IMG/VR virus record: IMGVR_UViG_3300027770_001980
Coordinates: 62,001-126,000 of that record
Reading direction: 5' to 3' (one strand)
Length of the DNA: 64,000 nucleotides
The notes beneath the pieces were generated by a model. The model made no database searches and was not told the origin of the DNA. It saw only the letters and a program-made list of their open reading frames with translations. Positions within the stretch are counted from its first letter, which is position 1, and each line of letters starts with the position of its first letter. The position numbers and the translations under genes are program-made. Positions 2-62,041 of this stretch are shown here, piece by piece.

Positions 2-586
2 CGTTTGGGTCTAAACTACAACAAAATTGATACTACTCTTACAGGGTCTGATAGCAAGACCAAACAAGATAAACAGGCAGTGGGTCTATACAGCATCTAC
101 AAAACTGACGGCGATATTGTAATGGTGAATAATTTTAACTATGGACAAAATGACATCAGCAATAGTCGTAGCGTAGGCGGATTGTTCAACAATGCCTATA
201 CAACAACGGGAAGTGATTTATGGGTTAACCACAGAGTTTATGCTCCTGAAATTGACAATGCAATTCGTCCTTTTGCTGGATATTCTGTAATACATTCAGA
301 AACAAATGGTTACAAAGAGTCCGGTAGTGTACAAAGTGCAAGAACAGTGGGCAGCACCAGCAGCGATACTGGATATGCAGAAGCAGGCGTTCGTGTTAGC
401 AAAAGAATCAACGATTTTGCTGTAACAGGCGAATTTGCTATGAATTCTGATACAAAAGTTACTGCTGAAGCAGGTATTACATATTCTCCATACAAAGATA
501 TGAGTGTTGGTTTATATGGAACTACCCAACAAGGGCTTGAAAATAAGACAGATACGTGGGCTTTAAAAGGTGTAATGAGATTTTAA
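2..586 (+). CDS. Autotransporter-like outer-membrane beta-barrel domain, C-terminal part (5' truncated by window edge)
   Basis: Frame is open back to position 2; alternating aromatic/hydrophobic beta-strand pattern; ends WALKGVMRF with the terminal Phe typical of outer-membrane barrels. Confidence 0.6.
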   Translation, partial: RLGLNYNKIDTTLTGSDSKTKQDKQAVGLYSIYKTDGDIVMVNNFNYGQNDISNSRSVGGLFNNAYTTTGSDLWVNHRVYAPEIDNAIRPFAGYSVIHSETNGYKESGSVQSARTVGSTSSDTGYAEAGVRVSKRINDFAVTGEFAMNSDTKVTAEAGITYSPYKDMSVGLYGTTQQGLENKTDTWALKGVMRF

Positions 587-1604: not shown

Positions 1605-2426
1605 ATGGATCATTATACAACTTTAGGCGTTGACAGAAACGCAGGACCAGAAGACATCAAGCAGGCCTATCGAAAATTGGCCATGAAACATCACCCTGAC
1701 CGAAATGGCGGAGATGATAGCAAATTCAAACAACTACAGGAAGCATACGATACCTTGAGTGATCCGGGCAAACGTCAACAATACGACAACCCAATGCCAC
1801 AAGGTTTCCACGGTGGACCTCCTCCGGGATTTGAAGACATGTTCTCACATATGTTTGGAGGAAATCATCCATTTGGCGACATATTTGGACGTAGGCCACA
1901 ACCTGTGAGAAACAGGAATTTGAATATGCAAACAGATATTACCTTTGAAGAGTCATTCTTTGGTAAGAATCTCATTGCCACTATCCAACTACCGTCGGGT
2001 AGAGATCAAGTATTAGAAGTCAAAATACCAGCAGGTGTTGCCGACGGAACTACTTTACGTTTAGCAGGTATGGGTGACGATAGCATAGGAAATATGCCAA
2101 GAGGTGACATTCATCTAACAGTACGTGTGGCTCCGCATCCTGAATATCAAAGACAAGGTGACGATCTGGTTCGATCACTATCTATCAATTGTTTAGATGC
2201 GATACTTGGTAAAACAGTAACATTCGAAACTATCGATCGTCGTAGATTAGAGATCAACATAACACCAGGTACGCAACATGGTCAAACATTAGCAGTACAA
2301 GGTTATGGTATGCCGAATATGTCTAACAGTTATATGAAAGGACGATTGCTATTAAATATCAATATCACCATTCCGACTAATTTAAATCAGAGACAAAAAG
2401 ATCTCATTAGACAGGCCTTAGTATGA
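1605..2426 (+). CDS. dnaJ: DnaJ-class J-domain co-chaperone (CbpA-like, no zinc finger)
   Basis: J domain with HPD (KHHPDRNGG), G/F-rich linker, C-terminal DnaJ_C domain (RLAGMG, GDIHLTV, GRLLLNI); no CxxCxGxG repeats. Confidence 0.92.
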   Translation: MDHYTTLGVDRNAGPEDIKQAYRKLAMKHHPDRNGGDDSKFKQLQEAYDTLSDPGKRQQYDNPMPQGFHGGPPPGFEDMFSHMFGGNHPFGDIFGRRPQPVRNRNLNMQTDITFEESFFGKNLIATIQLPSGRDQVLEVKIPAGVADGTTLRLAGMGDDSIGNMPRGDIHLTVRVAPHPEYQRQGDDLVRSLSINCLDAILGKTVTFETIDRRRLEINITPGTQHGQTLAVQGYGMPNMSNSYMKGRLLLNINITIPTNLNQRQKDLIRQALV

Positions 2427-2923
2427 AGATAGTTAAATTTCCCGACGCTATACTACGTAAGAGTATGCCAGCATTTGATTTCAATAATCCCGTCATGGAT
2501 CCAGTCAAACTTGAAACAGACATGATTGACGCTATGCTGGCATTAGATGGTATAGGTCTTGCTGCTAATCAAGTGGGTATTGAAACCCGTGTGTTTGTTA
2601 TGGGACACAGAGATAATCCAGACGCAGCACAGGCATTCTTCAATCCGGTTGTTACTGATAATACAGAAGATATTGCCGATATGGAGGAAGGCTGCTTGAG
2701 TTTTCCTGGAATCTATGTTAAAGTTAAGAGACCTACAAAAATCAAAGCACGTTGGCAGAACAGCCAGGGTGAATTTGAGGAAGGTGAGTTTGATGGATAT
2801 AACTGTAAGTGCTTCTTACACGAATACGACCATCTTGAAGGAATCGTGTTCCAAGATAGAGTTAGCACTCTGAAATGGGCCATGGCAGTAAAGAAAACTA
2901 AACAAAAGAGAAAACACAAATAA
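2423..2923 (+). CDS. def: Peptide deformylase
   Basis: All three PDF motifs: GIGLAANQ, EGCLS, HEYDH. Confidence 0.95.
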   Translation: MKIVKFPDAILRKSMPAFDFNNPVMDPVKLETDMIDAMLALDGIGLAANQVGIETRVFVMGHRDNPDAAQAFFNPVVTDNTEDIADMEEGCLSFPGIYVKVKRPTKIKARWQNSQGEFEEGEFDGYNCKCFLHEYDHLEGIVFQDRVSTLKWAMAVKKTKQKRKHK

Positions 2924-5205
2924 TGCTACAACCAAATAAAGACCTCGAAGATATTTTTGAATCAGCCGTTGGATATGCTAACGAGCATCGTCATGAATAC
3001 CTTACATTGGAACACTTCTTATATGGTATGGTGAAGAACGAACAGTTTGCAAAACTATTGACAAACTTTGGTGCTAAAGTAGATACGATAATCTCCGATC
3101 TTGAAACATTCATTAATGAAAATTTAAAAGAAATCGTCAACGATAGCGTAGATCGTCCTAAGAAAACTGCCACTGTTGATCGTATGCTACATCGTGCATA
3201 CAATACAGCATTATTCTCCGGAAGAAAAATAATTGAACCTGTGGACTGCTTTATCAGCATTTTCGCAGAGAAGAAAAGTCATGCATGTTACTTCGTAAGA
3301 AAAGCCAATATTGATAAAGACAAATTTATTAGTTATGTGCAGAAAGAGCAAGTAGAAGATGTTGAGGAAGAAGGTGAAAAACCGGTCAATCCTCAAGTTG
3401 AACGTATGCTTAATCAATTCTGTGTCAATCTATCTGCTCGTGCTAAAGGTAAGAAGATTGATCCTGTTATTGGGCGCGAGAAAGAACTCGAAGAAGTTGA
3501 ATTAGTATTGGCCCGTAGAAATAAATCTAACGTGATGCTGATTGGTGATCCGGGTGTGGGTAAGACTGCTATTGCTGAAGGACTTGCACGTAAGATACAC
3601 GAAGGTGCTGTTCCTAAATTCATCCAAGAACATACTGTTTACAGTCTCGATATTAGTGCATTGTTAGCAGGCAGCAAGTATCGTGGAGACTTTGAAGAAC
3701 GTCTTAAAATGGTAATTGGTGCTCTCGAGAAGAAAAAGAACTGTATCTTGTTCATTGATGAGGCACATATGATGAGTGGTGCTGGTGCCAGTAGTGGTGG
3801 CAGTAATGATATGGCCAATATGCTTAAACCAGCATTGAGCAAGGGCACTATCAAAGTGGTAGCCAGCACAACATGGGAAGAATATCGCAAGCACTTTGAA
3901 AAGGATCGTGCTCTAATGCGTAGATTCCAACGTGTTACTGTTGATGAGCCAAATGAAGCAACCTGTATTAAGATCCTTAAAGGACTTAAGAAGTATTACG
4001 AGAAACATCACGGTGTTAAGATCACCAACCAAGCAATCACCGATGCTGTAACTTACTCTGTCAAGTATATGACTGATAAGAAACTGCCGGACAAGGCCAT
4101 CGATCTTATCGATTGTGCCAGTGCTCGCTTCAAGATCAAAGATGAGGAAAACGGTGTAGTGGATCACGATGAGATCATGTTTGAAGTGGCTAAGATCGCT
4201 AATCTTCCACTGGAACAGATCAATGCCAAAGAAGGTAGCAATCTTGCAGGACTCGAAAAAGGCATGCGTGGTAAAGTGTTCGGACAAGAGAAAGCGATCG
4301 AAACATTGCTGGACAAGATCTTTATTGCACAGGCAGGACTAAAAGCATTCAATAAACCCGTTGGTAGTTTCTTGTTTGTTGGCCCAACTGGTGTAGGTAA
4401 GACAGAAGTTGCTAAACAACTGGCTTCTAACATGGGAATCAAACTAATACGCTTTGATATGAGTGAATTCCAAGAGAAACACAGCGTGGCCAAGTTCATC
4501 GGTGCACCTCCTGGATATGTAGGCTTTGAAGATAACGCAGGACAACTGATCACTAACCTACAAGAAACACCAAACTGTGTGCTATTGTTAGATGAAGTTG
4601 AAAAAGCACATCCTGATGTTCTAACAGTCATGCTACAGTTGATGGACAATGGCTTTATCACCGGCAGCAATGGCAAGAAAGCAGACGGACGCAACGCTAT
4701 TATCATCATGACCAGTAACTTGGGTGCTGCTGATGCTGAAAAGAACGGTGTTGGATTTGGTAGTTTAGATCGCGATAGTGATCCTAAGGATGCTGTCAAC
4801 AAGTTCTTTGCACCTGAATTCCGCAATCGTTTAGATGGTATCATCAAGTTTGGTAAGTTGGATCAAACCAGCATGACTAAAGTGGTTAAGAAGTTTGTTG
4901 ATGATCTGAACGCATTGATCAAAGATAAGAATGTCAGTATTAAACCCAATGCAGAGGCTATTGAGTATCTGATCAAGAAAGGATTTGATAGCAAGATGGG
5001 TGCAAGACCACTACAGCGTACCATTGATGAATACATCAAGAAGCCATTGAGCAAGGAAATCTTGTTTGGCAAGTTGACTAACGGTGGAGTAGTTGAGATA
5101 TCTGTTGAGAAAGATCAACTAAAACTCAATGTGATTGAAGTATTGCCAGTTGAACGAGTTAAGGTAGTGGACAAAGATGCAGATACAGAAACTATCGTCC
5201 AGTAA
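2923..5205 (+). CDS. clpA: ATP-dependent Clp protease ATP-binding subunit (ClpA-like, two AAA+ domains)
   Basis: Clp N-domain (HEYLTLEH); Walker A GDPGVGKT and GPTGVGKT; FIDEAH and LLDEVEKAH Walker B; no ClpB middle domain. Confidence 0.93.
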   Translation: MLQPNKDLEDIFESAVGYANEHRHEYLTLEHFLYGMVKNEQFAKLLTNFGAKVDTIISDLETFINENLKEIVNDSVDRPKKTATVDRMLHRAYNTALFSGRKIIEPVDCFISIFAEKKSHACYFVRKANIDKDKFISYVQKEQVEDVEEEGEKPVNPQVERMLNQFCVNLSARAKGKKIDPVIGREKELEEVELVLARRNKSNVMLIGDPGVGKTAIAEGLARKIHEGAVPKFIQEHTVYSLDISALLAGSKYRGDFEERLKMVIGALEKKKNCILFIDEAHMMSGAGASSGGSNDMANMLKPALSKGTIKVVASTTWEEYRKHFEKDRALMRRFQRVTVDEPNEATCIKILKGLKKYYEKHHGVKITNQAITDAVTYSVKYMTDKKLPDKAIDLIDCASARFKIKDEENGVVDHDEIMFEVAKIANLPLEQINAKEGSNLAGLEKGMRGKVFGQEKAIETLLDKIFIAQAGLKAFNKPVGSFLFVGPTGVGKTEVAKQLASNMGIKLIRFDMSEFQEKHSVAKFIGAPPGYVGFEDNAGQLITNLQETPNCVLLLDEVEKAHPDVLTVMLQLMDNGFITGSNGKKADGRNAIIIMTSNLGAADAEKNGVGFGSLDRDSDPKDAVNKFFAPEFRNRLDGIIKFGKLDQTSMTKVVKKFVDDLNALIKDKNVSIKPNAEAIEYLIKKGFDSKMGARPLQRTIDEYIKKPLSKEILFGKLTNGGVVEISVEKDQLKLNVIEVLPVERVKVVDKDADTETIVQ

Positions 5206-5879: not shown

Positions 5880-6320
5880 ATGCCAGCATTAAGTCAATCC
5901 CTAACATTTAAAATCAATAACAGTGACACCGTATCTGTAAGTTATCCGAATACGGGTACCACAGCACTAATTTACACCAGCGAACGCATCAAGGGGGATG
6001 GGTATTTCGGTGGTAGCGACGGTGTTCATACCGTATTCTGGAGCGTGGCCGAGTTTGTAGGTACCATTGAAATACAAGGTACCTTAGCATCCGAGCCGGG
6101 TGATTCTGACTGGACCAGTGTAAGACTCACCGAACCTGGCACTAAATTCTATATTGACACCACTGGGTTAGTTACAGATGCAGGTGTTGATAGCACTCGA
6201 TATGTGTTTGAGACCACCGCTAACAAATCTTATAATTTCACTGGAAATTTTGTCTGGCTACGCGGTCGTATCAGTGAATTTGAGCAAGGTGTGATGAATG
6301 GCATCAGTATAAACAGGTAA
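5880..6320 (+). CDS. Hypothetical virion-associated protein
   Basis: 146-aa beta-rich ORF downstream of the putative late promoter; KGDGYFG motif. Confidence 0.55.
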   Translation: MPALSQSLTFKINNSDTVSVSYPNTGTTALIYTSERIKGDGYFGGSDGVHTVFWSVAEFVGTIEIQGTLASEPGDSDWTSVRLTEPGTKFYIDTTGLVTDAGVDSTRYVFETTANKSYNFTGNFVWLRGRISEFEQGVMNGISINR

Positions 6321-6330
6321 TGGAATCACT

Positions 6331-7875
6331 ATGGCAAAACAAACAATAAATGTAGGAAGTGGAGAATATGCAGGTGATGGTGAAAGCCTGCGTTCAGCAT
6401 TGGTTAAGACCAATGAAAATTTCGACGAAGTTTACACAAATATTGATATTATCAATACTGCTGGTTATATAACTATTGATTCAGTACCAACCAATGTAGG
6501 TGATTTTAACAATGATGTTGGTTACCTAACCACAGAAACATTACCTGCATATCCTACAGTACCAACCAATGTAGGTGATTTTAACAATGATGTCGGTTAC
6601 CTAACCACAGACACATTACCTGCAACACCAACTGATCGATTAACAGCAGGGACAACTGCTACATTAGTATTGCTTGATGACGGAACACTCAAACTTACAC
6701 ATCCCACCGAATGGTGGAGTGGTGCTTATTCTTTAGAGATACAAAAAGACGCAGGTAACTATCATACTTTTAAGAGTTCCTATGGGTTAAGTCTACAGGC
6801 AACACCTGTTCCTAATGGCTATGGACTTAATACAAACACTAACTTTGTAGATATTTTCCACGATGGCGTCAGTGTTAATGTAAATGATAACACTTGGGGA
6901 TTTGGAACAGATGGTAGTTTAGCATTTCCAACAGCGGGGGCAGAATGGCCTATAACAGAATATTATGTTCCTACTCTTATCGGTAAAGATCAAATATCTT
7001 TTGCTACATATAATGCTGAAAATAGCACAAGTTCATATGCCGTATCAACTCAGGATAACAAAAGTTGGGAAGTATTTGCTGAAGATGATGTGGTCGGTTA
7101 TGGTTCTGGATGGGCATATCTAAGGGTAGAATTACCCACAATAGATACCCCTCAAGTTAATATTGAAACCAGGAAAGGTATTGATGGTGTTGACTATACT
7201 TGGACATTTGACGCAGATGGCAAATTAACCACACCTGGACATATTATCCCTAATGCTGATCTCGCATACGATTTAGGCAGCACCTCCAGTCAATGGAGAA
7301 ACCTATACGTTGGAACAGGTTTAGTATTTGTTGCTAACACACTGACCGATATCGGCATCACATTTGCCGATGGTTCTAGACTTACTTCAAGCAATGGTAT
7401 TGGAAGAACATCAATCGGTGATACCTATGTATCAGGTGCTTTCCAACAATTAACAATAGCAGATGATGAAGGAACATTGATTACAATTGCTGGAGGAAAC
7501 AGCCTCTTTAGATTACCACAACTAACCGCAGACATGTTAGGTGCTGAATTTGAATTTTATTTCTCTGATGTTGCTGGACAAGTTTATATACAGAGTTATT
7601 ATACAGGTGTTAGAGAAACCACCGATGTCTTTAGAGGTTCGATATATGTTGGAGTAGACAACGCAACTACTGGTAAGCTGCACACAGCCACTGCAACAAC
7701 TTCAACTGCCTGTGTTTTATTCCTTGGACAACATCATGCCAAGGAAGGCAGTTATATTAAAGTTAAAGCTATTGCGTTTGACACAGTAGGTACTTGGATG
7801 TTTCAAGGCATGTGCGTAGGTGATACCGGACAAACTCCTAATAGTTCAGACCATCCTTTCCAAGATTATAACTAA
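6331..7875 (+). CDS. Fibre/baseplate-like structural protein with T4 gp9/gp10-like N-terminus
   Basis: N-terminus MAKQTINVGSGEYAGDGESLRSALVKTNENFDEVY resembles the gp9/gp10 N-terminal motif; WxFxxDGxLxxP fibre-type repeats; Thr/Gly-rich. Confidence 0.6.
   Translation: MAKQTINVGSGEYAGDGESLRSALVKTNENFDEVYTNIDIINTAGYITIDSVPTNVGDFNNDVGYLTTETLPAYPTVPTNVGDFNNDVGYLTTDTLPATPTDRLTAGTTATLVLLDDGTLKLTHPTEWWSGAYSLEIQKDAGNYHTFKSSYGLSLQATPVPNGYGLNTNTNFVDIFHDGVSVNVNDNTWGFGTDGSLAFPTAGAEWPITEYYVPTLIGKDQISFATYNAENSTSSYAVSTQDNKSWEVFAEDDVVGYGSGWAYLRVELPTIDTPQVNIETRKGIDGVDYTWTFDADGKLTTPGHIIPNADLAYDLGSTSSQWRNLYVGTGLVFVANTLTDIGITFADGSRLTSSNGIGRTSIGDTYVSGAFQQLTIADDEGTLITIAGGNSLFRLPQLTADMLGAEFEFYFSDVAGQVYIQSYYTGVRETTDVFRGSIYVGVDNATTGKLHTATATTSTACVLFLGQHHAKEGSYIKVKAIAFDTVGTWMFQGMCVGDTGQTPNSSDHPFQDYN
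6482..6624 (+). repeat. In-frame tandem duplication, 75-bp period, 2 copies
   Basis: Copies start at 6482 and 6557 and encode VPTNVGDFNNDVGYLTT(E/D)TLPA. Confidence 0.9.
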
Positions 7876-7881
7876 AATATC

Positions 7882-8241
7882 ATGAAACTTACAGAATTCT
7901 TTAATCAGCCTATACAAATAAGCAAACGCGGTCAAGACACCGAGGATGACAAGCGTGCCGACGAACTCTTCTGGTACATCATCGACCACGATAAACTACA
8001 CAAAGATTACTTCCACTCTATCGCTCGCAAAGTAAAAAAGATGAAAGAATTCACTCCCGAGCAAGTGTCGGAAATGTATATGCCTATGGTGATCAAAGGT
8101 TGTAAAGAATACTATCACGAAAAAGAATTAAAAGGCAAGTTAGGTAAGGAATTTCCTCAAGAAATGAGAGATGACATGTGCCATAGACTGCATGATCACT
8201 ATCGCGAAGATATTGAAAAAGATATATACAAGTTAGGATAA
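7882..8241 (+). CDS. Hypothetical protein with CTS-like N-terminus (MKLTEF)
   Basis: 119-aa ORF; N-terminal motif shared with four neighbouring genes. Confidence 0.7.
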   Translation: MKLTEFFNQPIQISKRGQDTEDDKRADELFWYIIDHDKLHKDYFHSIARKVKKMKEFTPEQVSEMYMPMVIKGCKEYYHEKELKGKLGKEFPQEMRDDMCHRLHDHYREDIEKDIYKLG

Positions 8242-8245
8242 CGCT

Positions 8246-11200
8246 GTGAACTTAACCGAACTATTTAGAAATCCTAAATTAGCCATCAACGAAGGTGGCA
8301 ATGTATCTAATCAAAGTCCAGGGTGGCAAGGAGTTCCGGGAGATCATCAGGCACAGGAACTTGATCTGCATGTCCATGATCGCGCCTATGTGCAAGATGT
8401 AGTAAGCCAACTATTACATACTATTAACGATGTATATGCTCAACAGCATCAAGAACCATTATGGCATGAGAATTCCGTAAAAACTCAAAAGTTCTTGAGT
8501 GGTAGCACTTTACAATTCATGGATAAGAATATTCCAGATGAAGAATTCATTCGTGTTAAACCTAAAGTAGGCGATATTGATACACAGGCGTCTGACCAAC
8601 ATGCTGATACAATCAAACAGTTCTTACAAAGCAATACAGGCAAGGCGTTTGGCAATGCCGTATTGTTAGGATTCACCCCGGGTAATAGTCAATGGGTTAG
8701 TCTATGGGAGATCAAATTAAAAGATCTACCTGTCAAGATACAGATCGACTTTGAATATGGAGCACATGAGAAGGAAACAGGATTACCTACAGAGTGGCAA
8801 TCATATAGTCATAGTAGTGCATGGGATGATATATCTCAAAACATCAAAGGTGTATTCCACAAATATTTAGATCGTGCATTGCCATACGCACAGGCCAGTA
8901 CCAAGTATGTGGCCCGTGTATTAAAGAAAAGCACCAAGATCTCCGATGCACCTGTTACAGATAGTGATTATAGTTTCGCTGTCAGTGGACCAGGCGGCGG
9001 TGGTGTTAGTCAGAAGTATGTGCCTTACAATGATCCTGCCACTGGGCAACCTATGGAGAAAGATGGAATTCCTGTCATGCAATTACTGGAACCCAGTGCA
9101 AGACAGTATGTTCAAAATCTCTCCCAACAATTTGAAATCTTCTTTGGACGCAAACCCAAAGGTAATGACCAAGAACTTAAAAACAGTTTCATTGGAACCA
9201 TACAACTAATCGCAAAATATTTAGATGAACAGAAGAAAGAAGAAATAGCAAGACGCTTCTTCAGCATATGTTTTGAACCAGGTAGTCAAATGATTACTCG
9301 TGGTGATCCGGCAAGAGATCGTGATATAAAATTTGCGGCTATCGATTGGATGTTGGAAAATATGAAGTTGGCTAATGCTGCTGGTTTGAGAAAAGAAGCA
9401 ATCGATATGGCCACTGCTTATGCTGCCGCTTTCCAAAATAAGGCCGCTAAACCAGTTAATGAAGAAGCACAGGTAAAAGCACAATTCCGTAAAGGTATGC
9501 CACACTTGCACGATCTTAAGCCTGCTGACTTGTTAGATCTATTAGACGAAATTCATGACGGAAACGGCAGATTTAAACTACAAAACATTCCTTTAAACGT
9601 CAAAGTAGACGGATTTGGTGGCAGATTTGGTAAGAATTCCGACGGTAAGCCTTTCATGGGCACCAGTAGAACAGAACCCAGATATGAACCAGGCTTCGTA
9701 GCGTATCATCAAAAGAAAGGCACCGTTGATCCGGAAATTTTAAACCGTGCTCAATTGTTTGATGACCTATTTGAGGAAATGATGAACGCTGTCCAATTAG
9801 TTGATAGCAAGTTAGGACCTGGATTTTTGGTCAACAAACAAGTCACATGTGAAGTATTGTATCTACCATTTGCTACAGAAACTCCAGAAGGTAAACTAAA
9901 GTTTGTTGGTATACATTATGACAAATTACCATCAGGTGTCAATCTTGCATTAGTTCCATTCCGTATCACAGATGCTACCACAGGTGAAGATTTACCTAAC
10001 TCAAACAAAATCGTCCAAGAATTAACCAGCGTAGGGCAGTCAGGTAGTGTCATGTTTATTGACAACAGCCTAACACAGAATGAAGCATTAGATGTTACAG
10101 CATTAGTTCCACCATTGGAAAACATTGAACAACTCAAAGGCATGTTGGCCAGCAACAAGTTAGAAGCCCGACGTCAAGTCAAGGCAGCATTGGAGCCAGT
10201 GGCAGCGGCATTAGAGAAGGCCATCATCGAAGATCCTAACATCATCGGTAAAGATTTATTAGGACAAGACTATGAAGGTATCGTTATCAACAGCCGCCTT
10301 GGTCCTATCAAAGTAACCAGTCAAGAACAGCGTGATGTTATCACTGCTAAAAATGCTGCTAAGACTAATGCAAGAACAGAGCGTCCAAGAGGCGAGGCTA
10401 AAACCGCAGTAGTTGCCATTGGTAGTTTCGTTGGACACATCGGCCACGAACAACTTTGGGACTATACAACTAAGAAAGCAGCAGCAGTAGGAGGTGATCC
10501 ATATTTGTTTATTGGCAATGCACAGGGCAAGGATGATCCTATTCCACCATCAGTTAAAGTTCAAACATGGCACAAACTGTATCCAGAATATGCTAAAAAT
10601 ATATCCACGGTGAATCAAGATGGCGGATCACTGCTACAAAAGATCAAACACGAATTAATCAATCCACTACCAGGCAAGCCTCCACGCTATGATAATGTCA
10701 TCATCATGGTAGGTGAAGATCAAGCAGGTCTCACTATGCCTCAAGCATTGATGAAGGCTGTTAACAAGTTCCAGGGTTACGAACATGTAAAAGTTACATT
10801 AGAACCGACACCGCGTGGTACAGGCATGAGTTTCACTCGACTACGCAACATCTTAAAAGATCCCAAGGCAACTCCAGATCAACAATTTGCTGAATGGTCT
10901 AAAGGGTTTGATGTGAGCAAATTAGGTGCAGACTGGATCTTACACCTTATGGATATAACAAGGAAAGGTATGGGAATACAACAACCACAGGCACCTGTTC
11001 CGCAGGCACAACCTACACCGTTAGCAGAACGCAGAGTATTAAATGCTCTAATCGAAGGTACCAGTATTGACAGCACACTACGAGCCATCATCAATGATGT
11101 TGGTGAACCTATTACCAATGTCTATGGCACGATGAAATTCCAAGCCAAGAAGTATATGGAAAATCACGGCGAACTCGGCCGTGGCTTTAGAATGGTAGCA

Positions 11201-13219
11201 GCAGGTGTTGGTGGTCGTTGGGTTCAAAATATGTATGTAGGTAGACTACAGAATGAACTATACGATCTATGCAAATACAATACTCGTAGAACTGTAGATC
11301 TACAAGAATTCCTACGCGGAGTCGAAACTGACGGTGAGTTAGAAATGAAGAGATCATTTGGCAACATCGCTAATAATCTACCTCCAATATTGGCCAAGTT
11401 AGGCGAACAAATCAACGCACCACAACTAACAAGAAATGCTCAGCGTTGGATGCAGAACAAAGCAGAATACGAACGATATCTAATGGATCTGGAAGCAGCA
11501 GGCGATGAGCCGGATGATATTCCTGTTAGAAGCAAGCCTCCAAAGAGTAATGCTGTCGGGCAACAGAATGCACAGGTTGATTCAATCATCAACAATGTGT
11601 TAGGTAAAGTTCCTAAAAGTATAGCAGGTGATATCCGTAATGCTATCGCTCGTGCTCCAAACAAATTGGCAGCATTGAAAGCGGAGTTAGATCGTCACAA
11701 TATCAATATGGCAGAAGACAATGATGTTATGTCACGCATGGCTCGAGATCTAACTGGTCCAGGTGCTCCTGATGCGAAACGCAGAGCCCAACGCGATCAA
11801 CAGCGTCAGCAGGATCGTGCTCAAAGTGATGGCAGAGATCATGGCCCTAAATGGGATGTAGAGGAAGGCGAACAAGATCCACAGTCAGAATTAAAACTGA
11901 TTAACCAAAAACTCAAAGATGCGTATAAACAAGTTCGTAACAATTCTTCTGTGTCAATAGGTTGGTACATGTCAGAGGTAAAAGCATTAAAAGCACGCCG
12001 CGAAGAATTGATTAAACAATTAAGACAAGGTGTGGCGGAGGCCGGTAGTCCTGCTCAACAGGCAGCAATAGCCATTTCTATGAAGAAAGCAGGAAAGAAA
12101 CCAAAAAGTGAAGATATCTCATTAAACGAACTATCAGGATACGGCGGTGATAAAAAATATGAGCACTTAGGCACTCATAAAAGATATGAGGTTTATGTCA
12201 CTAAACAAAAATTTAATAATTTATACTTTATTGCAATTGCCGAGAATACAAGAACGTTAGAGTCAAAATTTAAAGCAAAAGGTAACACTCCACAAGAAGC
12301 AGTGAATAATTTAAAATTAGAAATTGATAAAGAAATCGATGTTGCTACCAAAGTCAGTGGACAGGCTATATTAGATTTTAATGTTGATTTTGTAAAAGAT
12401 ATATTAGAAATGAGTTCCGATACATTCTACGCTAAAATAGTAGCGGGGCCAAGATTAGTTATAGCAGGACCTGAAATGATGGAATATCCTGAAATAATGC
12501 GTGATGAAGGATTTAAGCCAAGTGCTATTAGAACATATAAGGGTGGCGAGGGGACTACAAAACTTCCAGGAGTTCCGCTAAGTTCTAAATCAGCAGCGTC
12601 CGCAAATCTTATTGCCAATGGTAGATATGTGTTAGGAAATGAAGAACTCGATAAAGACGGCAATAGAGTATTTGAGTTAAACTTTGATAGTGTGGTACAG
12701 GCGTCAAACGATAAAATGAGACTAAGGGCACCTGCTCTTACTGTAGGAACCAATAGATCTCAAGGTGTGTCAGAGGCTCCTAAAAGTGCTGCGGTTAGAT
12801 TAGGCAATGCTATCAAGCGTGTGCAAGGTACAACAGCAGCAAGCCAAGCAAGATCTGTTATCCCTTCAAGTATCCCTAAACCAGAACCCAAGAAGGATGA
12901 GAAAACTAATGAGAGAATGATGCCAGCCAGTATGTTCGCAGGCAGCAAAAAGAACAAACTCGGACCAGCAGGACAATGGAAGAACACCGGACCTAAAAAG
13001 AACAAACCAGCACAGGCCGGTGATTTAGTTGGCGGTATGGAGGAAAGTTTAAAAGATTCCAACCCTTGCTGGAAAGGCTATCACCCTGTGGGTACCAAGA
13101 AAAAGTCAGGTAAAACTGTTCCAAACTGTGTACCAGTGAGCGAGAATGTTGAAAACATTATGGATGCTCTGATTAACAAGATCGTAGTAAATGAAGCAAT
13201 TCAGAATAACCGTAAATGA
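8246..13219 (+). CDS. 1657-aa modular polyprotein: Pol-beta-like NTase, ligase-like KxDG domain, HIGH-motif nucleotidyltransferase and several small modules
   Basis: GTG start MNLTEL; SGS...GDID (8498-8581); NVKVDG (9602-9613) and later YEGIVI; HIGH (10436-10447) with GED and R..GMSFTRLR; C-terminal CWKGY...GKTVPNCVP module. Confidence 0.65.
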   Translation: MNLTELFRNPKLAINEGGNVSNQSPGWQGVPGDHQAQELDLHVHDRAYVQDVVSQLLHTINDVYAQQHQEPLWHENSVKTQKFLSGSTLQFMDKNIPDEEFIRVKPKVGDIDTQASDQHADTIKQFLQSNTGKAFGNAVLLGFTPGNSQWVSLWEIKLKDLPVKIQIDFEYGAHEKETGLPTEWQSYSHSSAWDDISQNIKGVFHKYLDRALPYAQASTKYVARVLKKSTKISDAPVTDSDYSFAVSGPGGGGVSQKYVPYNDPATGQPMEKDGIPVMQLLEPSARQYVQNLSQQFEIFFGRKPKGNDQELKNSFIGTIQLIAKYLDEQKKEEIARRFFSICFEPGSQMITRGDPARDRDIKFAAIDWMLENMKLANAAGLRKEAIDMATAYAAAFQNKAAKPVNEEAQVKAQFRKGMPHLHDLKPADLLDLLDEIHDGNGRFKLQNIPLNVKVDGFGGRFGKNSDGKPFMGTSRTEPRYEPGFVAYHQKKGTVDPEILNRAQLFDDLFEEMMNAVQLVDSKLGPGFLVNKQVTCEVLYLPFATETPEGKLKFVGIHYDKLPSGVNLALVPFRITDATTGEDLPNSNKIVQELTSVGQSGSVMFIDNSLTQNEALDVTALVPPLENIEQLKGMLASNKLEARRQVKAALEPVAAALEKAIIEDPNIIGKDLLGQDYEGIVINSRLGPIKVTSQEQRDVITAKNAAKTNARTERPRGEAKTAVVAIGSFVGHIGHEQLWDYTTKKAAAVGGDPYLFIGNAQGKDDPIPPSVKVQTWHKLYPEYAKNISTVNQDGGSLLQKIKHELINPLPGKPPRYDNVIIMVGEDQAGLTMPQALMKAVNKFQGYEHVKVTLEPTPRGTGMSFTRLRNILKDPKATPDQQFAEWSKGFDVSKLGADWILHLMDITRKGMGIQQPQAPVPQAQPTPLAERRVLNALIEGTSIDSTLRAIINDVGEPITNVYGTMKFQAKKYMENHGELGRGFRMVAAGVGGRWVQNMYVGRLQNELYDLCKYNTRRTVDLQEFLRGVETDGELEMKRSFGNIANNLPPILAKLGEQINAPQLTRNAQRWMQNKAEYERYLMDLEAAGDEPDDIPVRSKPPKSNAVGQQNAQVDSIINNVLGKVPKSIAGDIRNAIARAPNKLAALKAELDRHNINMAEDNDVMSRMARDLTGPGAPDAKRRAQRDQQRQQDRAQSDGRDHGPKWDVEEGEQDPQSELKLINQKLKDAYKQVRNNSSVSIGWYMSEVKALKARREELIKQLRQGVAEAGSPAQQAAIAISMKKAGKKPKSEDISLNELSGYGGDKKYEHLGTHKRYEVYVTKQKFNNLYFIAIAENTRTLESKFKAKGNTPQEAVNNLKLEIDKEIDVATKVSGQAILDFNVDFVKDILEMSSDTFYAKIVAGPRLVIAGPEMMEYPEIMRDEGFKPSAIRTYKGGEGTTKLPGVPLSSKSAASANLIANGRYVLGNEELDKDGNRVFELNFDSVVQASNDKMRLRAPALTVGTNRSQGVSEAPKSAAVRLGNAIKRVQGTTAASQARSVIPSSIPKPEPKKDEKTNERMMPASMFAGSKKNKLGPAGQWKNTGPKKNKPAQAGDLVGGMEESLKDSNPCWKGYHPVGTKKKSGKTVPNCVPVSENVENIMDALINKIVVNEAIQNNRK
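12026..12040 (+). repeat. Recurrent module-junction motif CAAGGTGTGGCGGAG (QGVAE)
   Basis: First 14 nt identical to 14839-14852; related copies at 12761-12775 (CAAGGTGTGTCAGAG) and 15148-15162 (AGAGGTGTGGAGGAA). Confidence 0.7.
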
Positions 13220-13451
13220 TATTCCGCAAAGTAGTGAAGATGACTGCTACTTGTCTCCAGAAGATCCTATACACGAACTAAAAGCCACATCTATCATGGG
13301 TGGATTGGGTGGGCAAGAACGGCTGGCAGCATACAAGGCCACATTGAGACAGCCTGTTGTAGGCAGCAATAAAGGGCAGATACAACGAGAGCAGAACATC
13401 AAACCCGGAACTGAGGAATGGTTCGAACTTTGGTTTGGTCGTAATAAATAA
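13191..13451 (+). CDS. Hypothetical protein
   Basis: 86-aa ORF overlapping the previous stop; ends IKPGTEEWFELWF. Confidence 0.65.
   Translation: MKQFRITVNDIPQSSEDDCYLSPEDPIHELKATSIMGGLGGQERLAAYKATLRQPVVGSNKGQIQREQNIKPGTEEWFELWFGRNK
13444..13450 (+). promoter_or_regulatory. Putative late promoter core (ATAAATA)
   Basis: ATAAATA 7 nt before the Dps ATG. Confidence 0.5.
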
Positions 13452-13457
13452 CATATC

Positions 13458-13898
13458 ATGGAACAATTAACACAAATCGCCAAGGTTGCTTTTGCCAGTG
13501 AATTCAGTTTCGCACTAAAAGCACAGAATTTCCACTGGAATGTAGAAGGTAGTGACTTCTTGGAATATCATCAATTGTTTGAAATGATATACAGCGAAGT
13601 ATACGGCAGCATTGATGACTTTGCTGAAAATCTACGCAAGTTAGGAACTTATGCTCCTGCCAGTTTATCACGATTCAACATGTTAACACAGGTTGGCGAT
13701 GAAACTGAAATACTACCATTAGAGGCCATGGTGAAAGAATTATTGATGGATAATGAGAAGATGATACTTATCCTGAAGAAAACATATGCTGCCAGTGAAG
13801 CAGCAGGTGAGCCTGGATTTAGTAACTTCTTGGCAGATCGCATTGATGGTCATCGCAAGCATGGTTGGATGTTGCGTGCCAGTAGCCGAGGTCAATAA
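13458..13898 (+). CDS. dps: Dps / ferritin-like DNA-protection protein
   Basis: FHWNVEGSDFLEYHQLFE, DDFAENLRKLG and HRKHGWML match Dps ferroxidase-centre motifs. Confidence 0.9.
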   Translation: MEQLTQIAKVAFASEFSFALKAQNFHWNVEGSDFLEYHQLFEMIYSEVYGSIDDFAENLRKLGTYAPASLSRFNMLTQVGDETEILPLEAMVKELLMDNEKMILILKKTYAASEAAGEPGFSNFLADRIDGHRKHGWMLRASSRGQ

Positions 13899-14263
13899 TG
13901 CGGGCACTTGAATTTATTACCGAAAAGAAAAATGGTAAACTTTCCAAGAGACAACAGCAACCCACAAGAGGTGCTAATGTCTACAGCGACGGTGAACAAG
14001 TAAGTGGTGATTATACCTCTTACAGGTTAGGTATGGCAGTAGCAGGGGCAGACGGCAAGACTCCGGTGAAAATAGATTCAAAAAGTTGGGTTGGCAAAAA
14101 GAAAACTACACATCCTTATTCAGAGGTAGAACAAGATATGTTAAAAGATGCCTACAAAGCAGTAGGTGCAAAATATACCGACCTTAACCACGGCGATATG
14201 ACCAGCAAAGAGTTAGAAGGAACAAACACAGTAAGTCCTGTAGCAAATTGGAATAAACAATGA
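13898..14263 (+). CDS. Hypothetical protein with CTS-like N-terminus (MRALEFITE)
   Basis: TAATG-coupled to dps; N-terminus resembles T4 internal-protein CTS MKTYQEFIAE. Confidence 0.7.
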   Translation: MRALEFITEKKNGKLSKRQQQPTRGANVYSDGEQVSGDYTSYRLGMAVAGADGKTPVKIDSKSWVGKKKTTHPYSEVEQDMLKDAYKAVGAKYTDLNHGDMTSKELEGTNTVSPVANWNKQ

Positions 14264-16017
14264 ACAACGAATTTAAACAAATATCAAAAGGCGATATAAC
14301 TCGTTATGTATTAGAAAGTGGCAGCAGCGGTGGCACCAGTTCGGGAAGTGTTGCCAGTGTCAGTATGCCCATAGGCGGTACACGCAAGCGAGGTGCTAAT
14401 CTAATCGCACAAGAAGCAGATAAGAAAACAGTTCCAGCAACTACTCCAAGAAACTTCGTTGCCAAAAATGCCAAATCAAGTGGTGCCGGTGCTCACAAAG
14501 ATAAAAAGAAAGCAGCCAAGCAAGGTCAAGAAAAACATAAGAAACCTTTTATGGAAGACCATAGTACCGCCTCAGGCGGATGGGGTAAAGGCAGCTACGA
14601 TACATATACCGCAGGCAATCATGGACGCGGAGTTGCTGAAGATGAAAGAGACCACCCTGATCATGAAATACAAATGGCCAGTAGTGAACTACTAAGTATT
14701 GCCAAGAATGCTGAAGAATTGTTAGGCTTAGTACGTCGCTATAGCGAACAGGAAGGGCTTGATGCTTGGCAACAAAGTAAAATTACCAAAGCAGCCGACT
14801 ATTTGAATAGTGTGCTACAAAGCGTCAACGGTGAACAGCAAGGTGTGGCGGAAGGCTCTGAAACATCACAACAGCAACAAGTTCGTGCTGCAATTACTAA
14901 AGGCATGGAAAAATGGGATAGTAATAATAAGTCTACATATCAGAGTCAACCAACTAAAACTAATTATATGCCACCCAGCGGTTACGCTAGCGATTCATTG
15001 ACAGGAGTAGATTCCATTGATCCTGATGGTACCGTGGTCATATCTCTTGGAAATACTGGTGCCGAAGCCACAATTAAAAAATTAGCAACATTAGGTGGTA
15101 TGCCCGGCATTAAAACTAGACAACTGCAATCACCAACCGTTTCATCTAGAGGTGTGGAGGAAGGTGAGGGAAAACGCTGTATGCAATGTGGCATGACTAA
15201 CTGTACATGCCCACCGGGTAAATGCAAATGCAAACCCGTTGCAGGATGGATCCCAAACAAGGGATTTAAGAAAGATGTAGACGAAAGTTGGGATGATATT
15301 AAAAAGTTTGGCAAGAAGGCCGCAGTTGCAGGTGCTATAGGACTCGGCATTGGTGCCGCACATGCCGGCGGATGGTCACCCTCCGATGTTCCAGCAGGCG
15401 GACATAATCAACTGCCGGACATCGTTGCCCATGTTAAGTTTAAAGTGGGTGACAAGGAAGTTAGCAAAGAGATCAATTTAGGATCACACTATCGCTCACC
15501 AGGTGAGGCAGGTAAAGAACTTGAGAACTTTTTAAAGTCTAAAGGGATAAAATTCTACGAATATAGTCTTGAAAGAGTTAAACCAAAGGACGACGATAAG
15601 ATGGATAGTTCCCCTGCTACCGGCGATATGAAAGGTAGCATGGATACTAAAGAACCTGCTGCTACTGGCCCATCTACAGACAACTATATGGCCAAAGATA
15701 ACGATCCAGAACACGGACCGTCAATGGGCGGAAAGTTTGTTAAAGAAGGTGCAAAGGTCGATCGTCAGGCCAAGCATATTACTGCCAGTATGATGAAGAA
15801 AGGCAAGAGCAAGAAAGATGCAGAATCTATTGCTTGGGCACATATCAAACATCCTAAGAACGAAAGCGCAGATCCATACTTTGAATCACTACAATCTATG
15901 GTTGAGAGACAACTGGAACCTAACATGGAATTAGATACATGGATTGATAATTTCCAACATGCTGATCCAAATAAGTATCACCAATTTAAAAATAAGACCC
16001 CAGAAAAAAAAAAGTAA
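14260..16017 (+). CDS. Modular low-complexity polyprotein with repeated Glu-terminated junctions (GVAE/GVEE/VDE/VKE)
   Basis: 585-aa ORF of short Lys/Gly-rich modules; contains a six-Cys module and an internal signal-peptide-like segment; possible -1 extension to 16070. Confidence 0.65.
   Translation: MNNEFKQISKGDITRYVLESGSSGGTSSGSVASVSMPIGGTRKRGANLIAQEADKKTVPATTPRNFVAKNAKSSGAGAHKDKKKAAKQGQEKHKKPFMEDHSTASGGWGKGSYDTYTAGNHGRGVAEDERDHPDHEIQMASSELLSIAKNAEELLGLVRRYSEQEGLDAWQQSKITKAADYLNSVLQSVNGEQQGVAEGSETSQQQQVRAAITKGMEKWDSNNKSTYQSQPTKTNYMPPSGYASDSLTGVDSIDPDGTVVISLGNTGAEATIKKLATLGGMPGIKTRQLQSPTVSSRGVEEGEGKRCMQCGMTNCTCPPGKCKCKPVAGWIPNKGFKKDVDESWDDIKKFGKKAAVAGAIGLGIGAAHAGGWSPSDVPAGGHNQLPDIVAHVKFKVGDKEVSKEINLGSHYRSPGEAGKELENFLKSKGIKFYEYSLERVKPKDDDKMDSSPATGDMKGSMDTKEPAATGPSTDNYMAKDNDPEHGPSMGGKFVKEGAKVDRQAKHITASMMKKGKSKKDAESIAWAHIKHPKNESADPYFESLQSMVERQLEPNMELDTWIDNFQHADPNKYHQFKNKTPEKKK
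14839..14853 (+). repeat. Recurrent module-junction motif CAAGGTGTGGCGGAA (QGVAE)
   Basis: 14-nt exact match to 12026-12039 in a different gene. Confidence 0.7.
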
Positions 16018-16066
16018 TGGCCACAGCGGCCTTGTATAAAGCAAGACAGCCCAAGGTGAAGAAACA

Positions 16067-16849
16067 ATGAGACTAGATGAGTTTGATCAAGAAGACTACG
16101 AGATACGCAATCTAAAGAAGTTAGATGGTATCTTGGTCACACTCTGCAAATTGGTCATTGAAGGCCAAAAGAGAGATAAAGAACGCTATGGTATGGTCGC
16201 TGCCGCTGTATTAGATCCTGACAATAATTTGGTCATGGGATTAAATTATATGCAAGGCGATTTACATGTCCACGCTGAAAAAGCGGCCATGGAAGCCTAC
16301 GATAGAAAATACGGAGATATTCCAGAAGGCAGTATTCTTCTTACTACATTGAGTCCTTGCAGTGAATTCAGTGACGAAACTGCACAAGAAAGACACGGGG
16401 ATAGTTGTACCGATCTAATTAATAATTCCATCATACGAAAAGTCTATTGCGGGTTTATGGATCCAAGCCAAGGTGATGACGAGCACGAAGAAAGAGAATT
16501 CACTCTACAAGAAACTAACAATACCAATATTAGAACATTATGTGAAAAGTTTGCTGATACATTCTTGGAAGATGAGTTGAATGAATCTGCTGCTTGGCAT
16601 CGTAAGGCAGGTAAGAATAAAACAGGTGGGCTCAATCGTAAAGGCGTTATGAGTTATCGTAGAGAGCACCCTGGCAGTAAACTACAAACCGCAGTAACCA
16701 CTAAACCCAGTAAATTGAAACCGGGTAGCAAGGCTGCTAAACGCCGTAAATCATTCTGTGCTAGAATGGGCGGCGTTGATGGTCCTATGAAAAAAGATAA
16801 CGGTGAGCCCACACGGAAAGCATTGGCACTAAGAAAGTGGAACTGCTAA
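16067..16849 (+). CDS. Zn-dependent cytidine/RibD-type deaminase domain fused to a basic C-terminal phage module
   Basis: MRLDEF N-terminus; HVHAE and TTLSPC...C deaminase motifs; after LNE a basic module (AAWHRKAGKN...RRKSFCARM...WNC) like DUF6321 of T4-like phages. Confidence 0.7.
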   Translation: MRLDEFDQEDYEIRNLKKLDGILVTLCKLVIEGQKRDKERYGMVAAAVLDPDNNLVMGLNYMQGDLHVHAEKAAMEAYDRKYGDIPEGSILLTTLSPCSEFSDETAQERHGDSCTDLINNSIIRKVYCGFMDPSQGDDEHEEREFTLQETNNTNIRTLCEKFADTFLEDELNESAAWHRKAGKNKTGGLNRKGVMSYRREHPGSKLQTAVTTKPSKLKPGSKAAKRRKSFCARMGGVDGPMKKDNGEPTRKALALRKWNC

Positions 16850-17457
16850 TGCGTATCAATGAACTACTTGAAAGTGCAGGTGATTTACCAAGCGATCCCG
16901 GTCCTAGAGAATTTATTAGTAATAAATTTCATGTTAAATTTACCAACGATGCTCTTTTAGTTTACGATGGCGGTGAACTTGTTTATAAAAGGCCAGGAAA
17001 TTTCTCAAACCCAACTAGGCAAAATGCGTCAAATGCAAAAGGTGTCACTAATACCCTGTGGAGGGCTAAACACGATCCAGCATATAAAAATCTAGCCAGT
17101 TCTCCTTACTTGGTTATAAAACCAAGTGACGTTCATAAAGCAGCCGACAAAAAAGGTATACCGTGGGATAAAGATAGGAAATTTTTTAATTTATCAAAAA
17201 AACTAACAGGTAAAGGTCATTTAGATAACATGACCCCAGAAGAACTTAGAATAATGTTTGATTACTTAACTAAGATAAAAGTTAGAGAAAACTTTGCTGA
17301 CGGTCGGCATCCTGAGGATAAGGGCGACTCAAAGCGTTATCATGTTCCTACCAAAGGTAGTGTCAGTAGTTTGAGAAAGTTTGCTAAAAATCATTCAGGT
17401 CGGGCAGCACAATTGGCACACTGGGCTGCCAATATGAAAGCAGGTAAAAAGAAATAA
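16849..17457 (+). CDS. Hypothetical modular protein with CTS-like N-terminus (MRINEL)
   Basis: Start refined to the ATG overlapping the previous TAA (TAATG at 16847-16851); C-terminal module begins VRE-NFADG. Confidence 0.65.
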   Translation: MRINELLESAGDLPSDPGPREFISNKFHVKFTNDALLVYDGGELVYKRPGNFSNPTRQNASNAKGVTNTLWRAKHDPAYKNLASSPYLVIKPSDVHKAADKKGIPWDKDRKFFNLSKKLTGKGHLDNMTPEELRIMFDYLTKIKVRENFADGRHPEDKGDSKRYHVPTKGSVSSLRKFAKNHSGRAAQLAHWAANMKAGKKK

Positions 17458-17999
17458 TGTTTAATTTTATAAAATATGTAGTTGAAGGCAAAGAGATCAA
17501 AACACTCGAACAAGTGAAGTTATCCTATGCCCGTGATGCTCTGGAACCTGTACTAAGTGAAGATGCTATAGATTATCATTATGGCAAACTATATAAAACT
17601 TATGTTAATCGCTACAACAATGGCGAAGGTGATCCAGACTTCAACGAAGCCGGTGCATTCTTACACAGTATGTATTTTCCACAATTACAAGTTCCAGACG
17701 AAACCAATGATCCATTCGGTGCATCTAAAGAGTTTATTGATCAACATTGGAAATCATTTGAAAACTTTAAAGAAGAATTTACCAAAGTTGCTATGGCCAT
17801 ACAAGGTAGCGGATGGGTCTATCTTGCTCGTAATGGTGAGATCAAAACCATTGTCAATCACCAAATCAAGAATGATATCATACTGCTGATAGATTGGTGG
17901 GAGCATGCCTTTAATATCGATTATCTTGCAGACAAGAAAGGTTATCTAACTAACCATTGGAAAATCATCAACTGGAATTTAATTAACGAGAGATTATAA
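17457..17999 (+). CDS. sod: Fe/Mn superoxide dismutase (compact)
   Basis: DALEP, YHYGKLYKTY, FLH, QGSGW and DWWEHA; the four metal ligands (H, H, D, H) are present. Confidence 0.88.
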   Translation: MFNFIKYVVEGKEIKTLEQVKLSYARDALEPVLSEDAIDYHYGKLYKTYVNRYNNGEGDPDFNEAGAFLHSMYFPQLQVPDETNDPFGASKEFIDQHWKSFENFKEEFTKVAMAIQGSGWVYLARNGEIKTIVNHQIKNDIILLIDWWEHAFNIDYLADKKGYLTNHWKIINWNLINERL

Positions 18000-61603: not shown

Positions 61604-62041
61604 TTATTGTACACTCAATCCAATTTCTTGATTAAATGATAATCTAAGTTGAGAAGTTTGATTAGTATTTTTCATTGCCAACGTAATTTCAATTAAGTAT
61701 CCTTGGGGATATTCATTGATTAAAATCTGTAATGGATGAACCCTGGGGTCTGACTTACATATAGCTGTTATATCTTTTGAAATAATTTCTCTCACCTTAG
61801 GTGTTAATGGTTCCATTAATAGATCCCATATAACACATCCAAATGAAGGATTCATCACACGCTGGCCCTTACGAGTATTAAAATGATTAATAATGTCTTG
61901 TTTAACCAAATCAAAATCATATAGTTTAGATGATCTATTAGCAGGATTCAAGGTACTGAAACCTTTATAATATTGGAATAAAGTATCAGGATGTTGTTCG
62001 CTATAGCTAACAGGATTTAGTTCGATGTTTTTGTAAGGCAT
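61604..62041 (-). CDS. Baseplate wedge protein, T4 gp25-like
   Basis: YKGFST...DFDLVKQDIINHFNTRKGQRVMNPSFGCVIWDLLMEP...DPRV. Confidence 0.9.
   Translation of the reverse strand: MPYKNIELNPVSYSEQHPDTLFQYYKGFSTLNPANRSSKLYDFDLVKQDIINHFNTRKGQRVMNPSFGCVIWDLLMEPLTPKVREIISKDITAICKSDPRVHPLQILINEYPQGYLIEITLAMKNTNQTSQLRLSFNQEIGLSVQ

Follow-up and report, generated by a model that had tools for sequence, protein, structure and literature searches.

A 64,000-nucleotide stretch of viral DNA, referred to here as the window, was analyzed for a block of genes whose products start with a common short N-terminal leader resembling the capsid-targeting sequence (CTS) of the internal proteins of phage T4. The window comprises positions 62001–126000 of a 221,356-bp JGI/IMG-VR contig, and the source phage is a distant, uncultured relative of T4 whose contig is 221 kb or more in length. 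The DNA polymerase of the window, whose gene is downstream of the block, was most similar to those of two T4-core jumbo phages, Phosso (51%) and Atu_ph07 (45%). The block lies within an array of tightly packed genes on a single strand (5880–17999, +), with intergenic gaps of −4 to +10 nt.

An earlier sequence-only reading of this DNA had assigned the tag to five genes, and all five starts were recovered exactly: MKLTEF at 7882, MNLTEL at 8246, MRALEFITE at 13898, MRLDEF at 16067 and MRINELLE at 16849, each on the plus strand. The first gene encodes a 119-aa protein (7882–8241, leader MKLTEFF) that had no matches in Pfam, PHROG or NCBIfam. The second encodes a candidate cargo protein of 1657 aa with several domains, a possible "polyprotein" (8246–13219); it has a GTG start codon, read as formylmethionine, and the JGI gene calls on the same contig match both the 119-aa and the 1657-aa products. 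The third product is a 121-aa basic protein (13898–14263, pI 9.2) with a canonical nine-residue leader, MRALEFITE. The fourth, of 260 aa (16067–16849), has the leader MRLDEF followed by a zinc deaminase domain (PF00383, 4e-9), which had been predicted among the tagged proteins, and a basic C-terminal DUF6321 domain (PF19846, 5.7e-21). The fifth is a 202-aa basic protein (16849–17457, pI 9.9) with the leader MRINELLE. In addition, a 585-aa protein (14260–16017, +) starts MNNEF and is counted as a putative sixth member with a degenerate or decayed tag because its orthologue at L022:14030 starts MKNNEF.

The regular expression ^[MVL][KRN]..E[FL] matched 7 of the 5064 start-codon positions on both strands of the window. 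The two matches outside the block, at 25985 (79 codons inside an open reading frame, ORF) and 38651 (an ORF of 21 aa), are not gene starts, and the claim that no gene outside the block bears the tag therefore holds for the window. The probability of at least five matches among approximately 56 genes was 4e-11 based on the empirical rate and 7e-9 based on amino-acid composition, with ~0.02–0.06 matches expected.

As a control, the regular expression was applied, with a spacer of two to three residues, to 50 kb of T4 (NC_000866). Among 4749 start positions it picked out only ipII and ipIII (MKTYQEFIAE) in full and ipI in part, and the tag of the window is therefore the CTS of IPII and IPIII minus one residue. 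The leaders of the 7882 and 16067 proteins match only the first half of the T4 CTS. T4 gp24 (MAKINELLRE) and gp22 (MLKEQLIAE) start in a similar style. The change E9D is reported to stop processing in T4 and to leave targeting intact. Ten N-terminal residues of IPIII are enough for packaging, with residues 4 and 7 acting in targeting and residues 8 and 10 governing processing (PMC9026906).

The leader in relatives and metagenomes

Related loci were fetched by homology to two of the block proteins and not by the tag. They contained many more tagged genes, with the fuller consensus M-[RK]-[AS]-x-E-F-[ILV]-x-E, and one locus (L009:10495–16614) had nine leader-bearing genes within ~6 kb, of which eight were directly adjacent. 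The tag preceded at least 16 unrelated cargo sequence clusters, and the Pfam domains behind it included DUF6321 (also alone), deaminase, GNAT, HAD-like, M48-like peptidase, LysM and DUF6267. The domain of the 16849 protein was fused behind DUF6321 in L005 and is separate, with its own MRINELLE, in the window; thus, a domain found within a fusion in one phage gains a tag of its own as a separate gene in another.

The codons at the tag positions varied synonymously (Arg as AGA, CGA, CGT or CGG, Ala as all four GCN codons, and Ile as ATA, ATC or ATT), and the DNA upstream of the tagged genes was unrelated from gene to gene; therefore, selection acts on the peptide. This is relevant to an explanation in which the tag is an mRNA or translation-initiation element, or a remnant of paralogy, with no role in targeting. 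N-terminal codons affect expression, and the tagged genes are adjacent, with some sharing modules. However, besides the free variation of the codons and the differing upstream sequences, the cargo domains are unrelated, the same domains are leaderless in other phages, and the leader ranges from 5 to 24 aa in length, yet has a fixed L/I-x-E junction. We regard this explanation as highly improbable.

A scan of IMG/VR for DNA patterns encoding MRAxEFIxE returned at least 120 stretches, versus eight for a control pattern in which the same codons had been permuted. Among the matches listed from IMG/VR, 121 of 147 were at ORF starts, defined as the start of an ORF of at least 50 aa. The corresponding number for bacterial and archaeal genomes was 11 of 74 matches, several of which resemble phage DNA binned into metagenome-assembled genomes. 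Genes for T4 gp17, gp4, gp25 or gp13 were within a few kb in 33 of the 120 viral pattern loci listed, with gp17 or gp4 in 31.

Predicted cleavage junctions, head module and virion evidence

Residues 1–385 of the 1657-aa protein had 66 homologues in a large protein database, 63 of which had the residues GGN near the start. A leader of 5–24 residues was present in 59 of the 63, and the other four started at M-GGN. In every one of the 59 leaders there was a Glu at P1, directly before the invariant GGN, and P3 was either Leu (43) or Ile (16). This L/I-x-E junction matches the cleavage rule of T4 gp21, and cleavage is predicted there. Near-T4 leaders were seen among these proteins, such as ...KTYQQFIAE/GGN in P0026 and MRAREFITE/GGN (a slash indicates the predicted cut). 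In the window, the leader of the 1657-aa protein has 16 residues (MNLTELF...AINE, 8246–8293, +), with a predicted cut after E16 and before the invariant G17-G18-N19. The homologues of Xanthomonas phage BUDD and Vibrio phage Va1 start MGGN. Six homologues (P0026, P0037, P0038, P0049, P0051 and P0056) have an MGGN or MSGGN start, a T4-like leader and a second GGN (e.g., MGGNLILKTYQQFIAE/GGN), which may reflect a wrongly called start, a duplication or two sites.

A comparable motif, [LIV]-x-E, preceded DUF6321 in 13 of the 13 domains found, both after leaders and at internal positions (alignment read by eye; an automatic tally gave 9). In the 16067 protein an L-N-E junction (E173/S174) is directly before DUF6321. 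The sole conserved L-x-E of the 7882 protein is at residues 3–5, and nine orthologues keep MKLxEFF[NG]KP.

The head module was reached by walking the contig, using precomputed Pfam matches and direct hmmscan. It is located at contig ~141.6–150.4 kb in the T4 order gp20-67-68-21-22-23, with Portal_T4 (PF07230, E 2.7e-109), Gp23 (PF07068, E 7.2e-98) and, between these, a gp21-type protease of the Peptidase_S77 family (PF03420, E 2.1e-25, L168:3404–4030). The gp21-like protease called for by the earlier reading is, therefore, encoded on the same contig. At the gp67 position there is an 81-aa protein that starts MLLNEFI, the same leader style as in many members of the GGN family. A 338-aa acidic protein at the gp68 position and a 360-aa helical protein at the gp22 position had no Pfam matches. 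Head genes were not detected in the fetched loci when single T4 head proteins were used as phmmer queries, and none were found beside gp17 in the relative L166, in which the gene order is not T4-like.

Virion evidence comes from Campylobacter phage vB_CcoM-IBB_35, whose gene 1-56 encodes a full-length homologue of the first domain of the 1657-aa protein (BLASTP 5e-34, 27% identity) with the leader MKLSELMFILE/GGN. The product of gene 1-56 was among 38 proteins identified by electrospray ionization tandem mass spectrometry of purified virions, with 17.0% coverage, compared to 2.5% for the portal (PMC3322345). Together, the match to T4 ipII and ipIII, the protease, portal and gp23 on the contig, the 59 of 59 junctions and the virion homologue support the initial interpretation, in which the tagged proteins would be packaged in the head through a T4-like CTS.

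The proteins behind the leader and their neighbors

The 1657-aa protein and its pieces had nothing significant in sequence searches of Pfam, NCBIfam and PDB. Its domain 1 (8294–9400, +) is a candidate pol-beta-type nucleotidyltransferase, with the invariant residues G86-S87, D110-x-D112 and D168-x-E170. In an AlphaFold (AF2) model of this domain the predicted local distance difference test score (pLDDT) was 93.2 and the predicted template modeling score (pTM) was 0.88, with residues 1–17, the leader, disordered (pLDDT <50). Foldseek searches of PDB with this high-confidence model produced no significant matches, only weak ones to pol beta/mu and small alarmone synthetase (E ≥ 0.076, template modeling score ≤ 0.27), and Pfam and PDB sequence searches of the domain also had none. 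Domain 1 is a new domain, well folded in the model. It is homologous to gp100 of Campylobacter phage CP220 and to IBB_35 gene 1-56.

Domain 2 (9539–10315, +; phrog_12709) has a ligase/capping-like motif pattern with invariant K-x-D-G (K453) and EG[IV]V (E677), and its assignment is by motif only. Alignment to T4 Rnl2 by hhalign was negative (probability 0.1), and there was no Pfam match. Membership of the ligase/capping superfamily is judged by motifs I, IV and V together with profile similarity, and domain 2 showed a motif resemblance alone. Domain 3 (10334–10993, +) is a cytidylyltransferase-like nucleotidyltransferase of the HIGH type, with HxGH at aa 730–734, a match to phrog_3041 (E 9e-11) and a weak match to FAD_syn; its BUDD and Va1 counterparts are annotated as, or match, CTP_transf_like. 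The proposal of three nucleotidyltransferase domains was thus backed in part: the HIGH-type domain has a PHROG match, the pol-beta-like domain is a candidate by motifs and a weak fold match, and the ligase-like domain has KxDG only.

The three domains are separate neighboring genes in Xanthomonas phage BUDD and are in two genes in Vibrio phage Va1, and are leaderless in both. Toward its C-terminus the 1657-aa protein has a short Cys-containing module, NPCWKGY...PNCVP (12947–13180, +; phrog_9737/4359/727), which is common to many phage proteins and had a 63% tblastn match in a cyanophage. A short PAQQAAIAI...KK module was also observed at window position 12050. Our best guess from the sequence is that the 1657-aa protein would function in nucleotide or RNA-end chemistry.

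The 121-aa protein (13898) belongs to a large family of basic leader-bearing paralogues of ~120–135 aa, often in tandem and often adjoining gp17/gp4, with 108 distinct members in the fetched loci. Because this family is small, basic and similar to the T4 internal proteins, the system comprises both enzymes and small internal proteins, and the earlier view that enzymes were carried rather than tiny internal proteins did not hold. By tblastn against cultured phages, the 7882 protein, the 13898 protein and a 128-aa leader family had no matches, that is, no cultured carrier in the collection; megablast of the block against cultured phages also gave none.

The 16849 protein ends in a basic module from aa 147 (17287–17454, +), ENFADG...AHWAANMKAGKKK, that is common to other leader-bearing proteins. 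This module (ENFADG...SVSSLR...AHWxANMKAGKKK) also ends unrelated leader-bearing proteins at L017:14955–16046, L006:7711–8874 and L005:534–1535, and DUF6321, ending ...RKWNC, is likewise a recurrent C-terminal module. We suggest that these modules may hold the cargo on DNA. The DUF6321 region was identified by tblastn in 522 phage records, mostly those of cyanophages and pelagiphages. The DUF6321 protein of Prochlorococcus phage P-RSM4 (L003:4500–5597, between g16 and g17) was observed to start MATNEIIE, resembling MRINELLE and the MAKINELLRE of T4 gp24, and cyanomyovirus DUF6321 proteins may use the same route into the head.

Two genes within the block lack a canonical leader: a Dps/ferritin-like gene (13458–13898, +; PF00210, 4.7e-17) has none, and an Fe/Mn superoxide dismutase gene at the block end (17457–17999, +; PF02777, PF00081) encodes an N-terminal extension of ~15 residues that includes V-V-E10. 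An 86-aa ORF at 13191–13451 (+), a doubtful gene with no family match, shares 29 nt with the end of the 1657-aa gene. The array opens with two unannotated genes for acidic proteins of 146 and 514 aa (5880–7875, +).

Directly upstream of the array on the same strand (1605–5205, +) are genes for DnaJ (PF00226/PF01556), peptide deformylase and a full-length ClpA homologue (TIGR02639, E 1e-266). These proteins might be candidates for the handling of unfolded proteins at head loading or after ejection, and a review proposed a similar role, in virion assembly, for the ClpA/ClpX of jumbo phages (PMC7824862). The proximity of these genes raises another explanation, in which the phage ClpA/DnaJ would read the tag as a signal for recognition or degradation, such as an N-degron exposed by cleavage, and the tag would not be a capsid signal. 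A cut after E5 would expose Phe or Leu, both N-end-rule residues. However, the leader is widespread in loci with no ClpA nearby, the tag agrees with both the T4 CTS and the rule for cleavage by gp21, one homologue occurs in virions, and ClpA may instead serve unfolded proteins in virion assembly, as in the review. A degradation signal is, in our view, very unlikely.

The T4 late-promoter motif TATAAATA was nearly absent across the window. ATAAATA, the core of that motif minus its first T, was also rare, at 8 sites versus ~28 by a rough composition estimate. Six of the eight were 11–34 nt 5' of gene starts (598, 5866, 13444 and 33413 on the plus strand; 61582 and 62052 on the minus strand), including those of gp25, of the baseplate gene for a 1127-aa protein and of the gene that opens the cargo array (5880), for which the distance is 14 nt. 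As a promoter signal, this shorter motif before a few genes is too weak to call.

Other genes were noted further from the block. A 4969-aa protein with a Laminin_G_3 match (43267–58176, −) is in the baseplate/fiber cluster and adjoins the 1127-aa DUF8360 protein and gp25. A 676-aa protein with a match to an Autotransporter beta-domain (PF03797) is at window 5–586 (+), with its upstream part at L156:6952–8982, and is followed by a GTA_holin_3TM-like protein. A histone-H1-like Hc1 protein (PF07432) and a SegE-type GIY-YIG endonuclease adjoin gp46/gp47 at L167:13128–13753 (contig ~135.9–136.5 kb).

Proposed head loading and comparison with known systems

It is likely, in our judgment, that the tagged proteins are targeted to the prohead core in the manner of T4, trimmed after Glu by the gp21-type protease, carried in the head and probably ejected with the DNA. 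Under the mechanism we propose, the array proteins would be made late in infection and their first 5–16 residues would bind the scaffolding core during prohead assembly on the portal. In the consensus M-[RK]-x-x-E-[FL]-[ILVF]-x-E, the Phe and the residues preceding it would correspond to the T4 targeting positions. The gp21-type serine protease inside the prohead would then cut after the Glu of [L/I]-x-E, with predicted cuts at E16/GGN in the 1657-aa protein and after E9 in the 121-aa protein, so that the leader is removed and the mature protein stays in the head. The cargo, which would range from small basic proteins similar to T4 internal proteins, through a deaminase, to the 1657-aa multi-enzyme polyprotein, would be packed with the DNA and most likely accompany it into the next host cell. 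Many cargo proteins have basic modules at the C-terminus, for example DUF6321, and these may retain the cargo on DNA. We infer core binding, cleavage and packaging in this phage, as well as ejection and the roles of the enzymes in the host; ejection with the DNA would be by analogy to T4.

Several points weigh against this interpretation. The mass spectrometry of IBB_35 indicates presence in the virion only, and neither location within the virion nor trimming (PMC3322345). In the alignment of the 13898 family the leader is the best-conserved segment, and many members were found via the leader, so that this conservation is partly by construction. For the 7882 and 16067 families any propeptide would have only 5 residues because only the L-x-E at residues 3–5 is conserved; the nearest precedent is T4 Alt, which loses six residues (PMC5694885). 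The Glu before GGN or DUF6321 could be part of the domain, with no cut site, although the homologues that start at M-GGN speak against this. The AF2 model of the 13898 family was extended, with two helices (pTM 0.39), and these ~125-aa proteins could be degraded core material.

The last point belongs to a rival account in which the leader-bearing proteins are components of the prohead core or scaffold and the leaders are their propeptides. These proteins would enter the prohead, be trimmed or degraded there by the protease and have a role in assembly, like T4 gp67, gp68 and gp22, and would not be delivered as effectors. In line with this, the 81-aa protein at the gp67 position starts with the leader-like MLLNEFI, the 13898 family occurs as tandem paralogues adjoining gp17/gp4, and T4 core proteins begin with similar L/I-x-E motifs. 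Set against these are the deaminase, nucleotidyltransferase-like, GNAT and peptidase domains, which have no obvious scaffolding role, the persistence of the domain-1 homologue in mature IBB_35 virions, and the 13898 and 16849 proteins, whose basic pI resembles that of T4 internal proteins. We consider a core or scaffold role for the leader-bearing proteins as a whole to be unlikely; it may apply to the small families (7882 and 13898) even if the enzymes are true cargo.

A further difficulty for the head-loading interpretation is that in two relatives a twin-arginine (Tat) signal directly follows the nine-residue leader (MRAQEFVNE/DLTRRGFLRGLG...; L010:13737–14312 and L039:2992–3612). This points to a periplasmic destination and is a poor fit to an injected cytoplasmic effector. 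If the leader were lost in the head, the protein would mature with the Tat signal at its N-terminus, which suggests that it is re-exported to the periplasm once injected; the alternative is that these proteins are never packaged. The Tat motifs could also be taken to mean that the tag itself is an export or membrane-targeting signal. However, the leader is short, acidic and hydrophilic, without a hydrophobic core, most of the cargo has no signal peptide, and the Tat motif follows the leader and is not the leader. An export role for the tag is scarcely credible.

Returning to head loading, the principle is that of textbook T4, and reviews have already proposed that T4-like phages can load a variety of proteins by means of the CTS. 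A literature search found no paper on the leader outside the T-even phages, on its spread in metagenomes or on DUF6321, and a broad survey of jumbo phages mentions no CTS, CTS-like tag or propeptide (PMC7824862). The leader also shows that the T4 CTS is not confined to the T-even phages and would be an old mechanism that has been retained widely. We tentatively suggest, as a proposal whose chances we rate slightly short of even, that the nine-residue leader (M-R-A-x-E-F-I-x-E and variants) is a general head-loading label in a large, mostly uncultured T4-related branch, marking hundreds of unrelated proteins that include polyproteins, deaminases, acetyltransferases, peptidases and Tat proteins re-exported after injection. 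If this suggestion is correct, the leader and basic C-terminal modules such as DUF6321 would be the two parts of a system for packaging and ejection, and the injected effector repertoire of these phages could be read from the genome sequence. Proteins injected with the DNA decide the first minutes of infection through anti-restriction, anti-signaling and host takeover, and have been identified in very few phages, as finding them takes virion proteomics of cultured isolates. With a tag recognizable in metagenomic sequence, the proteins that uncultured T4-related and jumbo phages package would become predictable. Such a tag would also flag new candidate counter-defense enzymes, give context to families such as DUF6321 and supply alternative short leaders for the established technology of T4 protein packaging.

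Among the closest known systems is that of T4 IPI, IPII and IPIII and their CTS (Mullaney and Black, 1996), in which an N-terminal propeptide of ~10 residues is found on otherwise unrelated proteins. The two share the pattern M-basic-...-E-F-I-x-E, in which the aromatic residue and the I-x-E fall at equivalent positions, and both genomes encode a gp21-type protease. In both, part of the cargo is small and basic, and a constant leader precedes hypervariable cargo, as in the T-even internal proteins, which are diverse behind a constant CTS (PMC9026906; PMC3012670). Unlike in T4, the consensus here is one residue shorter (MRAxEFIxE), the leader varies from 5 to 24 aa, and the cargo includes large enzymes, the 1657-aa polyprotein and C-terminal basic modules (DUF6321 and others); no sequence homology was seen between the mature parts and the T4 internal proteins. 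T4 Alt, a packaged and injected ADP-ribosyltransferase, is similar in being an enzyme with a very short propeptide. It is cut at ITE-6, with the loss of six residues, and again at LTE-619 (PMC5694885). These sites can be compared with L-T-E5 of the 7882 protein and with the L-N-E173 that precedes DUF6321 in the 16067 protein; there is, however, no homology to Alt and the enzymatic activities differ. The ejection proteins of giant phages of the phiKZ/SPN3US type, processed by gp175/gp245, also comprise many head-internal proteins, including enzymes, with N-terminal propeptides cut after Glu by a gp21-related protease. Their propeptides are mostly >100 residues with an S/A/G-x-E motif, whereas here there are short T4-type leaders and a canonical T4 head module.

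The polyvalent proteins of phages and conjugative elements, attributed to Iyer et al. in 2017, reportedly have several enzymatic domains per polypeptide and are said to have been proposed to enter the host with DNA. The 1657-aa protein, with three domains and C-terminal modules, is similar in having two or more enzymatic or effector domains in one phage polypeptide, but the polyvalent class is defined by other domain sets and contexts (e.g., MuF-type linkage). No polyvalent-class domains were present in the Pfam and PHROG scans of the window proteins, with no dedicated comparison made. Finally, CP220 gp100 and IBB_35 gene 1-56 are leader-bearing homologues of domain 1 in T4-like phages, and differ in being stand-alone proteins of 388 aa, not fused to other domains.

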